This document shows, one piece after another, positions 17,001 through 23,000 of a stretch of 64,000 nt of DNA. Position 1 is the first letter of the stretch. Each line of letters begins with the position of its first letter. The DNA comes from Macrostomum lignano (lineage: Eukaryota). The notes beneath the pieces are model-generated. The model did no database searches and was not told the origin of the DNA. It was given only the letters and a program-made list of their open reading frames with translations. A program made the position numbers and the translations under genes. The stretch spans positions 62,001-126,000 of the forward strand of contig NIVC01000272.1 of NCBI GenBank assembly GCA_002269645.1. Reading direction: 5' to 3'.

Positions 17001-20000
17001 GACAGCTCACAGGGCCGCCTTGGAAACAGAAATTGAGTAACCGTAGCGTCAATTTAGGACAGAAGCCTCCCCGCACTGGGAAATCCCCGAGGACCCGCCA
17101 GAGAGAGGCGCCTTCACCGCCCCCCCCCCCCCCCCCCCCCCCTGACAGCCGGGGTGGCACGGAAAGTGCGCCTAAAAATCCAACCAGAAATGTCTGTTCG
17201 ACTCTTTCTGGACGATTATGTTTCCAAAGCAGAGTTGCAAGCGAGCTGAAGCAGAAGACGCGGGTGAAACACGATTGCCGATTTGGCGATGCCGGATGTG
17301 CCCGCGGCGGGATTAGGGGGTTAGGGGGGGGGGTCAATTTTTCGATCGCGTAAAGCATTCGGGTCATAAAAGCATCTGATGCGTTGAAAACATTGGTCCC
17401 TTCCGAAGTGGTTAAGCTTGTGCTCATGTCTGGATTTTGGTCAATTTAATTTGATATATGAGGCTTAGAGCTGTGCATGCACATTTTAGTGTCACTCTGT
17501 ATGCTGCATGAATATAAATTTTCTATGCTATTGCCTCTATTTTTTACCATTTTGTTGCCTAACGGTCACTTTAGTAATGCCAAGCCTCTGTTCGTAGTTA
17601 CCCTGCGACCTTGAACCCCCAATTCTGGACTTCGATTGAGGTGCTAACTGGCTACTTCCTGAACAATTGCTGATCAAATTCCACCGTCTCCTTCTCAACT
17701 AACTCCGCGCGATTAAAGCTCAATGCTAACCTTGGCCGAAATGAACCCGTCATCTCCAGGTACTGGTCGTCCCTGCGCAACCTGGTGATCTCCCTGCTCA
17801 ACTCGATGCGGTCGATCATCTCCCTGCTGTTCCTGCTGTTCCTCTTCATCCTGATCTTCGCCCTGCTCGGCATGCAGCTGTTCGGCGGAGAGTGAGTGCC
17901 GGAGAGCTAGTACCAGTAAATGAGCACCCTAGTTAGGTAGTTTGGGTTGTTCTCGCCAATGAGGGCAATCCCCAGGGCGCAGAGAGAGTACCTGCCTGCC
18001 CTGTGTTGAGAAGGTCAGGTCTTGAAACAGTGACTTGAAAAAAAAACGGAAAAATGATAGAGGCGTCAAAGCCCAAATATATTCGATCCTCAAAGTGGAA
18101 CTCCACTAGCTCCTACTGACCATTTACAGGGGATAGAAAGTGAGCAGGGATCAGGATAGGAAGAGCTTTATCACCTCAATCGATCGCTTAAAACCTCCAG
18201 CATGCAAAACGGCTCTAATGTTGTCCTTGCAGGTTCAACTTTCCGGAGGGCCGGCCGGCTCAGAACTTCGACACATTCGTCAAAGGCCTGCTCACGGTGT
18301 TCCAGGTGGGAAGGCGCTTCGCCTCGTGCGCCCCAACTTTTTAAATATTCATGGGAAAATCAATTTCACCTGCTGGCTTAGAGATCCGGGCGGGTGGGAA
18401 TGAAAGACGGCAATACCTGGTTGAGTTGTTTTGAACTTTTAGCTGAGATTGTGCTTTGCTCCGTTGTTTTTTCAAAACTCACCAGTCCAATAGTGAGTTG
18501 CAATGACCCCATGCAGCAAGAACTTCATCAACTGGTTGACGACATTGATGCGTAGCCAGGTGAGGGGGCAAGTGGGGGCCGTGGCCCTCCCCTATCGATA
18601 GGCCCTAACTTTAAAACTGATGGCCTTCTTTGCAAAGTGACGGAAATTTTGCATGCTCGGTGCAAAACATTACTGAATAAGCGCTGGCATTGCTTAACTT
18701 GCTAATTATGTTAATTGCTAATAGATTGCCCCTACGGTAGTTTTGCACAGTTTGTTTTTTGCTGTAAATTTGATATTTCCTTTCTATTAATTTACATTTG
18801 GGTGCAAAACTCTTTAAGAAGCATTTTTAATTGTATAAGAGTACAAAGTTAATAATACTGTCTGAATTAATAGTATAAGTATATGCAGAAAGCAGGTTTA
18901 TTAACAGCTCAGGTTAGAAAAAGCGTCAGAAAATGTGAGAGCGCTTCTGAGCGCTACTGACAGACAGACAGACAGAAAGACAGACAGACAGACAGACAGA
19001 CAGACAGACAGACAGACAGACAGACAGACAGACAGACAGACAGACAGACAGACAGACAGACAGACAGACAGACAGACAGACAGACAGACAGACAGACAGA
19101 CAGACAGACAGACAGACAGACAGACAGACAGACAGACAGACAGACAGACAGACAGACAGACAGACAGACAGACAGACAGACAGACAGACAGACAGACAGA
19201 CAGACAGACAGACAGACAGACAGACAGACAGAAGGACAGACAGTAAACCTCCCCATTTGGCACGGGACGGACCAGGTGCTGACCAGCGAGGACTGGAACA
19301 TGGTGATGTACGCGGGCATTCGCTCGCAGCGGACTGCCAACTCGTCCGGGATGTGGGCCGCGGCCTACTTTGTGATCCTGCTGCTCTTCGGCAATTGTAT
19401 CCTTTGCAAGCCACCGGGATTTCGCGAGGGGGTCCCAGAGTTTGATTGACAGTTTGTGCTTTGTTACTGTGCTCTTAATGCAGCACGAGACTCCAGAGTT
19501 TTCAGTTGTACATGAACTACCAACATCGCATCCGCAATCCATGAAGTCCCGAATGCTTTCCCAGTTGTGTAAAAGTTTTTTTTTGACCAAGCTTCTGCAA
19601 ATGACTCGCATGCCTCTCTGCCGGCGATGCCCGGTCCCAAACTCAGGCTTCAACCTTTGCCCAAATATCCATGTCCGCCAGCATTTCCTGTCCGCTGGAA
19701 GACTGGATCAGCCCTGACATGGCTCATTTAAATCAGACGCTAATCGAATTGAGATAATAATTTGTTTATTCGTTCCACCGCGCCGCCCAGATTCTGACAG
19801 GAGAGGACTGGAACCTCGTGATGTACTATGGCATCAGGTCGCAGGGTGGGGTGGGCCAGGGCATGGCCTACGCCACGTATTTCATCCTGCTGGTGCTGTT
19901 TGGCAACTGTATCCTAGCAACAGCTGGCTTATTCAATTTTAATACATAGTTTATCACTTTTTTGTTTATTTCTTCACACTATTAAGCTTACTTTCGCTCT

Positions 20001-23000
20001 ATCTTCATTTTTTCTAAAAAAAGTCCTACAATTGAGTTTCAATTTTACTCTGTTGCTAAGTTAGCTTTCATTCTGAGCACTTTCGGCGGCACTCCTCACT
20101 GGTAATGGGCTGCTTTACCTTGGGGCTCCGGACACCGCACACCAGTTCAGTTCAAGGCTGCAACTCTCACGGAGCGATCAGCGTGCATGCTGACTTCTGC
20201 ATTGGCTTATTTTATTAATATTTAAAAATTGTTACAATACGCATCTCACCAGCTCATTGCATATTTTAATTCTATATAGCAAGCATGCCGGTTTTCATTA
20301 CAAATCAGAGTAGCTGACTTGGGTTTCTTGGAAACCGGGGCACTTAAGCACTGGGGTGAGAAGTGTGAACCAACTGGAATGTCAAATCCGACTGCTGGAA
20401 AGCAGAGGATGGGGGAGCACTGTAGTAAAACTGATGCAGGATATTATTGGCCACAGTCTCTTTAGCAGCAGCAGCAGCAGCGGCAGCGGCTACTCATCAA
20501 TCAAACCACAAGCTGAGGGAGCAGGGGGGACCCCGGGACAACTGAGGAAGAGAGGAATTTTTGAGCAGGCGAAAATGATGAAAGTTTTTATTGGCACAGA
20601 GACCGGGACGAGGAGAGTCCAGGAGACTGGTGATGGGGCGGCAGCGGCAAGTTTGAACAGTCAATGAGAGAACTGCGATTGTAAAGTGCACAGCCCGGCT
20701 CCATCTGAGCTCCCAGTCTGGCTCTCCCCCAGATTCCAGCTCTGCGTGCTGCACGAGCGTTAAGCTGCCCAATTGAACTTTGAGTAACAATAAATTCTAT
20801 CGCATAATATCGGGTATGAACGTTGCTTATTTAATCGCTACTGATTTCTCCTATTCACTGCCTGAGAACTATTTAAACTACAATATCTATTTGCATTTAT
20901 ACAGCCTGAGTTTACCTTGCACTTGTCTGACTCGTGCTTAGAGTGCGCACTTTTCGGCATGGAAATGCCTGCGAACTTCACGTGTTTTCCGAATTTTCCT
21001 TAACCTAATACAACCGAAAACCAACCGCGTCAAGACACTCTATTGAACGTGTTTCTGGCCATCGCCGTTGACAACTTGGCGAATGCTCAGGAGCTCACGG
21101 CCATGGATGAGCAGCGCGAGAACGAGGAGAAAGAGGTGATGAAGGGGAGAACTCTGTGGGATGCAGCTGAGACTCTCGGCTATTTAAATTTGTCTCTAAG
21201 TGTCTAGGCTAAAAAAATAAGGTCCCGAAGGTCCCGAAGGTCTCGAAGGTCCCGAAGGTCCCGAAGGTCCCGAAGGTCCCGAAGGTCCCGAAGGTCCCGA
21301 AGGTCCCGAAGGTCCCGAAGGTCCCGAAGGTCCCGAAGGTCCCGAAGGTCCCGAAGGTCCCGAAGGTCCCGAAGGTCCCGAAGGTCCCGAAGGTCCCGAA
21401 GGTCCCGAAGGTCCCGAAGGTCCCGAAGGTCCCGAAGGTCCCGAAGGTCCCGAAGGTCCCGAAGGTCCCGAAGGTCCCGAAGGTCCCGAAGGTCCCGAAG
21501 GTCCCGAAGGTCCCGAAGGTCCCGAAGGTCCCGAAGGTCCCGAAGGTCCCGAAGGTCCCGAAGGTCCCGAAGGTCCCGAAGGTCCCGAAGGTCCCGAAGG
21601 TCCCGAAGGTCCCGAAGGTCCCGAAGGTCCCGAAGGTCCCGAAGGTCCCGAAGGTCCCGAAGGTCCCGAAGGTCCTACATTGCCTCCTCACACTCCCGCC
21701 CGCTCCCACCGAACTCCGACATCAAAGAAGCGAGAGGAGATGCTGCGCACGGAGGCCGAGGCCGAGGCCGAGCAGGCGGATCCCGCAGCGGCGACGTCGA
21801 ACGCCCCGATGCTGAACGTGGTGCCGCCAACGCCGGGCCAGCTGATGAGCTCGTCTGCCGAGCCGCAAAGGTTCGACTAGTAAGCGCCTGGAAGCATGCA
21901 AATTCATGAAGCTTCGGTAGGGTTTCCAGACTATCATTTGCAACCAATGCGTCCAAACTTCCGTTAAGCAGCTGCAAGGACTCAAGGGAGCCTGGCGAGG
22001 GCGACAAGCTCACATCGGAGTCGCGGCGACTGAACGGCCTGGAGGCGGAACGGGGAATCTTGAATCAGAGTGAGATTTGGCCTGGTTTTTGTTGCAATGA
22101 TGAGTGAGCGAGTCTGGGAGGGAGTGACTTCATGAGTGACTTCATGAGTGACTTCATGAGTGACTTCATGAGTGACTTCATGAGTGACTCCATGAGTGAC
22201 TTCATGAGTGACTTCATGAGTGACTTCATGAGGGACTTCATGAGTGACTTCATGAGTGACTTCATGAGGGACTTCATGAGTGACTTCATGAGTGACTTCA
22301 TGAGTGACTTCATGGGTGATTTCAAGTAAGCGAGTTAGTGCATTAGTTAATGATCTCATGAGCGAGTTTATGACTCACGAGTTTTGTGAGTGAGTTTATT
22401 AGTTCATGATTGAGCTTATTTAACATTTTTTTATTTCTACAAAACATTCGGCAGAGTCGGAAGAGTCGGGCCAGCAGGAAGAAGGCGACATGCTCATTGG
22501 CGTTGGCAAGCCGATTCTGCCCTACAGCTCAATGTTTTTCCTGGGACCCACCAACCCGTAAGCTTGCCGCTCATTACTACTCAGTGAGTAGCTTTGATCG
22601 AACAAAGCTCACGTTAGTACAAACTCGCAAAAAATTGACAGAATCCGGCGATTCTGCCACTTCGTGGTGAACCTGCGCTACTTCGACCTGTTCATCATGA
22701 TCATCATCTGCGCCAGCAGCATCGCCCTGGCCGCCGAGGACCCGGTGGACATCAAGAATTTCACGCCGAAAAATATCTACCTTGGCTACTTCGACTACGC
22801 CTTTACTCTGGTCTTCACTATTGAAATGGTGCTCAAGGTTCGTCACAGTTTGCGGTTGAGTTTAGATCGGCACAGATTCAGGAAAACAAGTAGCAAATTA
22901 ATAAGCAAGCTGATATTCTCCTGTTAGTCTACTTGAGGCAAACAGATTTTGTTGCATTTTTCAGAAGTTTCAGAAGGCGTATTTACGATTGTTATAAAAA

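Follow-up and report, generated by a model that had tools for sequence, protein, structure and literature searches.

Tandem pore exons between a U2 and a U12 intron of a flatworm Cav2 channel gene: a probable mutually exclusive pair of JNK type

The subject here is a tandemly duplicated exon in the gene for a Cav2 calcium channel alpha-1 subunit, carried by a 64,000-nucleotide stretch of flatworm DNA (contig NIVC01000272.1, positions 62,001 to 126,000; the whole stretch is called the window, and coordinates are counted from its first letter). The two copies, exons 15a and 15b, each encode the selectivity filter of domain II (TxEDW), the P2 helix, the extracellular linker and the N-terminal half of IIS6. 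They are preceded by an intron of the major, U2-dependent class and followed by one of the minor, U12-dependent class, and the intron that separates them begins like the latter and ends like the former. The pair is probably locked into mutual exclusion by this hybrid intron, as are the alternative exons of vertebrate JNK kinase genes, and all the sequence-level predictions of such a U2/U12 incompatibility are supported by the analysis. The mechanism is already known; what is new is the gene, the exon and the phylum in which it is seen.

Anatomy of the pair and class of its splice sites

The anatomy is plain from the DNA. The exon numbers 14 to 16 are nominal, the exons concerned being about the 12th to the 14th coding exons of the gene. 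Constitutive exon 14 (18233..18305, on the + strand, as are all the features of the gene given below) encodes the end of IIS5-P1 and has a U2-type donor, CAG|gtgggaagg. The U2-type intron that leads from it to 15a (18306..19275) carries a (GACA)71 microsatellite at 18959-19243. Exon 15a (19276..19396; ggaccag|GTGCTG...GGCAATT|gtatccttt), the derived copy, has 121 nucleotides (nt) and goes from phase 0 to phase 1, and the U12-type GT donor at its end (19397..19405, GTATCCTTT) agrees with the consensus at 9/9 positions. This donor opens the hybrid intron (19397..19790), at the other end of which is a U2-type, pyrimidine-rich acceptor (tttgtttattcgttccaccgcgccgcccag), with CTAAT as a branch candidate. 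Exon 15b (19791..19908; ccgcccag|ATTCTG...GGCAACT|gtatcctag), the canonical copy, has 118 nt and the same phases, and its own U12-type GT donor (19909..19917, GTATCCTAG) agrees with the consensus at 7/9. The last intron, U12-type and GT-AG, occupies 19909..21034 or, with 15a used, 19397-21034. Towards its end the motif TTTTCCTTAACC (20994..21005), with TCCTTAAC at 20997-21004 and the branch A at 21003, provides a U12 branch site for either donor, and constitutive exon 16 (21035..21135; acceptor caag) follows with the second half of IIS6.

The exon and motif coordinates of an initial annotation, made from the letters of the window alone, agree base for base with direct reading and translation. 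Its description of the two exons as encoding the domain II filter plus IIS6 holds for the filter; for IIS6 it has to be restricted to the N-terminal half, the rest being in exon 16. Tandem homology (the copies appear as direct repeat D2), equal phase and near-equal length are all features of a pair of JNK type. The combination of 14, 15a and 16 and that of 14, 15b and 16 are both open, each giving a Cav2 domain II pore and IIS6, and inclusion of both copies or of neither (121 + 118 nt) shifts the frame and brings an early stop.

For the scoring of splice sites that the annotation had called for, a U2-donor matrix was built from 22 other introns of the gene (mean 5.7 bits, standard deviation 2.75), and stands in for published U12/U2 matrices. 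On it the exon 14 donor, claimed to be U2-type, reaches 6.0 bits, and as U2 donors those of 15a and 15b, with -4.5 and -3.3 bits, fall far below the gene's mean. Their assignment to the U12 class, which draws on these low scores, on the 9/9 and 7/9 agreement with RTATCCTTT and on the presence of a U12 donor at the same site in a snake and a schistosome, can be upheld. The U12-type signals of 5′ splice site (RTATCCTT), branch (TCCTTRAY) and acceptor (no pyrimidine tract) are present, with a perfect TTTTCCTTAAC 31 nt before exon 16 and no pyrimidine tract after the branch A. That both donors have one U12 branch site in common, as had been proposed, is consistent with the single occurrence of TCCTTAAC in the whole of 18306-21034 and with the pyrimidine-poor acceptor of exon 16. 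The acceptors of 15a and 15b had been described as U2-type and devoid of a U12 branch motif, and no TCCTTAAC-like motif with up to two mismatches was found in the last 150 nt before either of them, nor one with up to one mismatch anywhere in the 15a-15b intron. The hybrid nature ascribed to that intron, with a U12 donor, a U2-type acceptor and no U12 branch motif, is thereby borne out.

Short motifs of this kind are not enriched over the window (9 occurrences of RTATCCT against 10 expected, 5 of TCCTTRAC against 4), so the argument for the U12 class rests on position and conservation. Both donors interrupt the homologous codon, GGN AAY T|GTATCCT. Between the copies the donor heptamer is identical at 7/7 positions, the next 53 intron bases agree at 12/53, as random sequences would, and 60 upstream bases agree at 22/60. 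The probability that a neutral heptamer would have stayed intact at the divergence seen in silent sites is between 0.0003 and 0.008.

The splice logic that these features suggest starts from a single ancestral exon for the filter, the P2 helix and the first half of IIS6, with a U2 intron upstream and a U12 GT-AG intron downstream, that would have been duplicated in tandem along with its own acceptor and donor. The U2 donor of exon 14 would pair, through the major spliceosome, only with the acceptor of 15a or that of 15b, and the U12 donors of 15a and 15b, through the minor spliceosome, only with the U12 branch site and acceptor before exon 16. Neither spliceosome should be able to remove the hybrid intron, which begins as a U12 and ends as a U2 intron, and the direct joining of 14 to 16 would likewise be barred. 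The outcome would be exactly one pore exon per mRNA, with the lengths of 1 modulo 3 adding a frameshift and premature stop as a safeguard. The exon would be chosen at the U2 step, through competition of the two acceptors as in JNK2; 15b, with the better acceptor and the canonical sequence, is probably the default, and 15a, with a weak acceptor and a perfect donor, probably the regulated alternative. A channel made with 15a would have an altered outer pore, with Ser for a near-invariant Gly beside the filter Glu, RT for GG, and an N-x-S sequon. We infer that both exons are expressed, that they exclude one another in dependence on the minor spliceosome, and that the resulting channels differ in function.

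A docking and selector mechanism based on RNA structure was considered as well. A 14-nt inverted repeat (19910-19923 and 20050-20063) overlaps the 15b donor. However, the fold of 19895-20075 has a z of -1.6, which is not significant, and the candidate was dropped for that reason.

Ancestry of the minor intron and age of the duplication

From its occurrence at the same place in distant animals, the minor intron in IIS6 is judged to be ancestral, in agreement with the suggestion of the initial annotation that the exon was duplicated next to such an intron. In the Cav2.3 gene of the snake Thamnophis (L001) the pore exon ends GGGAATT|GTATCCTTC, at the same codon and in the same phase, and CCCTCAAC is located about 10 nt before the AG. 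In the Cav2 gene of Schistosoma margrebowiei (L082) the position and phase are again identical, the exon ends GGCAACT|GTATCCTTT, and CCTTAAC is found 21 nt before the AG. At both loci there is one pore exon between the flanking exons. Most of 80 metagenomic Cav loci have no intron at the IIS6 site, and in four (L059, L065, L067 and L076) an intron at the same position has a U2-type donor (AATT|GTAAGT or GTATGT), the likely reason being a change of class from U12 to U2 in those lineages. In rat Cacna1c, introns 2 and 13 are reported to be minor (PMC8767276), which may fit such ancestry. Duplication in related genomes, for which the initial annotation had proposed a search, did not come to light, the pore exon being single in the snake and Schistosoma and a pair being absent from the 80 metagenomic loci.

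An internal control is provided by a second minor intron of the gene, in IS1, at 5230..5442. It is a textbook AT-AC intron (ATATCCTTT ... TTTTTCCTTAACC ... cac|G), from the sequence of which minor splicing is taken to be active in the organism. Conserved minor introns of voltage-gated Ca and Na channel genes were reportedly treated by Wu and Krainer in 1999, a paper cited in PMC8767276 and PMC6865273. Among Ca and Na channels a U12 intron in IS1 is described as conserved (PMC6259924), and the AT-AC intron has the same position. The flatworm Cav2 gene has both the IS1 AT-AC and the IIS6 GT-AG intron, with the distinction that in those other genes only one exon, a constitutive one, precedes the minor intron of IIS6.

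The control is also pertinent to the spacing of the branch site. In U12 introns the distance from the branch to the 3′ splice site is usually about 10-20 nt. It is 31 nt in the IIS6 intron discussed here, 30 nt in the IS1 AT-AC intron, 21 nt in Schistosoma and about 10 nt in the snake. Given the near agreement of the two introns of the one gene, the long spacing looks more like a trait of the organism than a ground for doubting the site; the minor introns of this flatworm likely have a longer branch spacing that is specific to its lineage.

Comparison of the two copies indicates that they arose long ago and that each has been under constraint. Identity between them is 61.5% for DNA and 60% for protein, and there is one codon indel. 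By the Nei-Gojobori method the proportion of differences is 0.68 at silent sites (pS), which is saturated, and 0.29 at nonsynonymous sites (pN), with a dN/dS of ~0.2, and the differences are distributed over the three codon positions as 15/7/23. When the same number of substitutions was placed at random on 15b in neutral simulations, 0/20,000 reached the observed amino-acid identity and 26% were free of stops. Of the residues that never vary among 103 distinct homologues of the pore segment, namely T, E, D, W, N, M, Y, Y, F, G and N, exon 15a has kept every one. Three near-invariant positions have changed: next to the Glu of the filter, where 97% have Gly, 15a has Ser, and in place of GG (91% each) it has RT. 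An N-S-S sequon has been gained, and 102/103 homologues are closer to 15b than to 15a. We conclude from these comparisons that 15b is the canonical copy and that 15a is an old derived copy under constraint on both its protein and its splice sites.

The closest named protein, Macrostomum lignano UniRef A0A1I8J3F4 (P0394), is a predicted model with errors at several points. At the IIS6 intron it reads ...LFGN-CILGAQ..., a read-through of TGTATCCT that places 23 spurious residues, starting CIL, after FGN, and at the AT-AC intron it is without 28 residues of IS1. The predictor failed at exactly the two minor introns, so that the absence of 15a from the model is uninformative. Exon 15b, for comparison, has 37/39 residues identical to it. 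Minor introns and tandem exons appear to be systematically mis-annotated, and with the closest public model mishandling both minor introns and fusing tandem copies, pairs of the present kind are likely missed by standard annotation.

Competing readings and known systems

Several considerations weigh against a lock of JNK type and are gathered here with the alternatives on which they bear. The alternative that survives best, though it is unlikely, is that 15a is a relic or is very rarely used, with 15b alone in use and the hybrid intron having no regulatory role. Exon 15a has a weak acceptor, in which 17/37 bases are pyrimidines, YTNAY is absent and the last upstream AG is 31 nt away, and the (GACA)71 array, directly upstream, ends only 32 nt before it. 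The exon has changed at three near-invariant positions, and all but one of the 103 homologues are nearer to 15b. It is not represented in P0394. No second pore exon was found among the 80 metagenomic Cav loci or at the Schistosoma locus, which counts weakly. Protein searches with 15a, with 15b and with the domain IV exon returned short proteins only, among them no close relative and nothing like 15a; as the search seems to favour short targets, and as the one close relative to compare is a faulty gene model, this is a weak point. However, saturated silent sites together with a dN/dS of ~0.2, and the failure of every one of the neutral simulations to match the protein identity, are not what a relic would be expected to exhibit. 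Nor does 15a, with its open frame, intact AG and 9/9 U12 donor amid a randomised flank, resemble a long-dead exon, and the silence of a model that mishandles both U12 introns means little.

Less probable again is that both exons are used and that exclusivity comes from competition of the acceptors combined with frameshift and nonsense-mediated decay, the U12/U2 mismatch being an incidental by-product of the duplication. The arrangement is what duplicating an exon between a U2 and a U12 intron automatically yields. The lengths of 121 and 118 nt already put double inclusion and skipping out of frame, both in or both out bringing a premature stop, which would render a lock redundant; frame incompatibility alone makes double inclusion unproductive. 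Human mutually exclusive clusters are mostly frame-incompatible, with U2/U12 cases under 1% (PMC5740500). Further, two more tandem pairs of the gene have no U12 site at all, and the U12 arrangement may therefore add little.

The first of these, for IIS3-S4, consists of two 113-nt exons, at 15265-15377 (GC donor gcaagt) and 16058-16170 (GT donor gtactg), with introns that are GC-AG and GT-AG. It looks mutually exclusive with no U12 site involved, and it is conserved in M. lignano, the model of which has both copies, fused, with 89% identity of a to a, 76% of b to b and 58% across. The presence of both in the model implies that the exon was already duplicated when the two genes split. As with 15a and 15b there is an excess of silent change, a pattern of purifying selection. 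The second pair, for IVS1-S2, occupies 29982-30101 and ~30897-31043 (the start of the second being uncertain); both exons are multiples of three with U2-type sites, the second is the canonical one, being 95% identical to M. lignano, and again both are fused in the M. lignano model. With ordinary splice sites in both of these pairs, only the pore pair would carry a minor-intron lock: the gene appears to diversify by exon duplication generally, the pore pair alone having inherited such a lock.

Against an explanation by frame and decay, the two mechanisms are compatible with each other. A U12 donor and a U2 acceptor are, on current understanding, unspliceable (PMC1874599), and the block acts whether or not it was selected for. 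The mismatch also bars the skip from 14 to 16 before there is any transcript on which decay could act.

That the GTATCC donors are instead weak U2-type donors, with TCCTTAAC a chance match and the minor spliceosome not involved, is very improbable. The donor at 10857, accepted as U2-type, is also poor and starts with GTAT (CAA|gtatagca, -2.7 bits), the short motifs show no enrichment over the window, and the 31-nt spacing from branch to AG, long for a U12 intron, is atypical. However, the AT-AC intron of the same gene, which is clearly minor, matches that spacing, both copies agree with the U12 donor consensus at 7-9/9 positions, a perfect branch motif stands before an acceptor with no pyrimidine tract, the same site is U12 in the snake and the schistosome, and it was at exactly these two introns that the gene predictor failed in the relative. 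An assembly artefact that set two alleles or paralogues next to each other is the most improbable account of all: micro- and minisatellites are extremely abundant in the region, and Macrostomum genomes are repeat-rich and partly duplicated, but 61.5% DNA identity with a codon indel and unrelated flanks is far beyond allelic divergence, and the two further tandem pairs of the gene both recur in the independent M. lignano protein model.

For the lock itself the closest precedent is in kinases. Exons 6a and 6b of the vertebrate JNK genes (MAPK8/9/10), with a U2-U12 hybrid intron, are said to have been described by Letunic in 2002. The initial annotation had likened the flatworm pair to them, and the comparison is accurate: in JNK2 the order is the same, a U2 intron, exon a, a hybrid intron, exon b and a U12 intron, and the intron between the alternatives, with its U12 5′ site and U2 3′ end, 'cannot be properly spliced' (PMC1874599, Chang et al. 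2007). There too tandem duplication took place beside a minor intron, and the downstream exon owes its status as default to the pyrimidine tract within the hybrid intron (PMC1874599); the better pyrimidine tract of the flatworm pair likewise belongs to the downstream exon, which is the likely default. The differences are that an ion-channel pore is concerned and not a kinase, that the organism is a flatworm and not a vertebrate, that the origin is independent, and that usage and exclusivity are experimental findings for JNK and are deduced from sequence for the flatworm Cav2, where a frameshift would be a second safeguard.

Among human mutually exclusive clusters, those of U2/U12 type are in MAPK8/9/10/14, CEP170 and CRTC1, and include no channel gene (PMC5740500, Hatje et al. 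2017, Appendix Fig S18). MAPK14, CEP170 and CRTC1 have the same incompatibility of splice-site class, but with the U12 site 5′ of the cluster, and none is an ion channel. The mutually exclusive exons of human CACNA1 genes that are listed in the same study (for example 8/8a of CACNA1C and 37a/b of CACNA1A and CACNA1B) are not U12-locked (PMC5740500).

From the perspective of the protein the parallels are in other channels. Invertebrate NALCN has exons 15a/15b for the domain II filter (EEEE/EKEE), and Cav3 has exons 12a/12b for the domain II turret (Senatore et al.; PMC4436565). In these cases, as in the flatworm Cav2, tandem mutually exclusive exons swap part of the domain II pore of a four-domain channel; in NALCN, however, it is a filter residue that changes (E/K), whereas the flatworm Cav2 keeps the filter Glu and changes its neighbour (G/S). 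The Drosophila Cav2 gene, cacophony, has mutually exclusive pairs for IS4A/B and for the I-II loop A/B (PMC11828482). It resembles the present gene in being a single invertebrate Cav2 gene with such pairs, and its pairs for IIS3-S4 and IVS1-S2 belong broadly to the same category; the cacophony pairs are, however, in the voltage sensor of domain I and in a linker, with no pore pair and no reported U12 lock. In full-text literature searches neither a paired Cav2 pore exon nor a U12-locked pair of any channel gene turned up, in line with the view of the initial annotation that none had been described for the pore exon of a calcium channel.

On the preferred reading of a U12-locked pair, this would be a clean and probably functional second origin of a rare lock, in an exon that forms a pore. 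Incompatibility of spliceosome class is, in textbook terms, the cleanest means of enforcing mutual exclusion, yet the proven cases are confined essentially to one vertebrate kinase family. An independent case in another gene family and phylum would mean that such locks come about readily once an exon next to a minor intron is duplicated. It would also be a concrete benefit that could help minor introns to persist in ion-channel genes. Alongside NALCN 15a/b and Cav3 12a/b, an alternative for the filter, P2 and S6 of domain II of Cav2 would be a further natural experiment on the tuning of permeation by the outer pore of that domain, the Gly/Ser position beside the filter glutamate being almost invariant elsewhere. 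A broader proposal has to be treated as tentative and somewhat doubtful, namely that three independent tandem pairs (IIS3-S4, the domain II pore and IVS1-S2) diversify this Cav2, the pore pair acting as a true switch of permeation, pharmacology or glycosylation through Gly/Ser beside the filter Glu, GG/RT and the new N-x-S site. All productive transcripts would then have to go through the slow minor spliceosome, the activity of which would limit both isoforms and so channel abundance, with competition of the U2 acceptors picking the exon. On that proposal no earlier voltage-gated channel would have had an alternative pore under a U12 lock, and the JNK solution would have been re-invented independently outside vertebrates.

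The gene and its surroundings

The identity of the gene was established by a domain map, made by tblastn of the window with full-length reference Cav proteins obtained in an exhaustive search of representative proteins. The map places a Cav2 alpha-1 gene on the + strand from ~5007 (near the ATG) to a stop at 40157, with domains I-IV spread over 5-33 kb of the window. Compared with solved structures, the exons of domain II match Cav2.2, Cav2.1 and Cav2.3 best (E 3e-54 to 6e-52), ahead of Cav1 (~1e-41) and Cav3 (~1e-33). The C-terminus, ...NAYWC (40154), keeps the WC of the PDZ-ligand motif of Cav2, D/E-D/E/H-WC (PMC7456537), without the two acidic residues that precede it. From the four domains, the closest match to Cav2, the acidic domain II filter TxEDW and the C-terminal WC, the gene is assigned to the Cav2 (N/P/Q/R-type, cacophony-like) alpha-1 class. 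Identity to A0A1I8J3F4 is 80-96% in most transmembrane exons and much lower in loops, and by this measure the window comes from a Macrostomum-like flatworm, the gene being either a paralogue of the gene for that protein or an orthologue of it in a congener.

The exon structure is uneven. One large exon (31869-32796, ~309 codons) runs from IVS4 to IVS6 and on over the EF-hand region and pre-IQ segment. It suggests that introns were lost extensively from the 3′ half of the gene, versus the many small exons kept in the 5′ half. Two introns of the gene, at 15378 and 27418, are GC-AG with the GCAAG donor consensus. Long micro- and minisatellites are present in almost every intron, amounting to 20 repeat arrays at 707-34969 with periods of 4-109 nt and up to 122 copies, examples being those at 5584-8508, 24227-25707, 33573-34969, 18959-19243 and 21219-21675. 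A scan of the whole window with Rfam gave zero matches.

Downstream of the Cav2 gene is a gene for a Cys-loop receptor (Neur_chan_LBD, E 1.5e-9), at 48681-49046. It is followed by an open reading frame of 220 codons that occurs three times, ~4 kb apart, at 51760-52419, 55745-56404 and 60162-60821, the set being either tandem gene copies or further duplicated exons. A neighbouring open reading frame, at 55741-56184, has a sequence like that of TM1-TM3.

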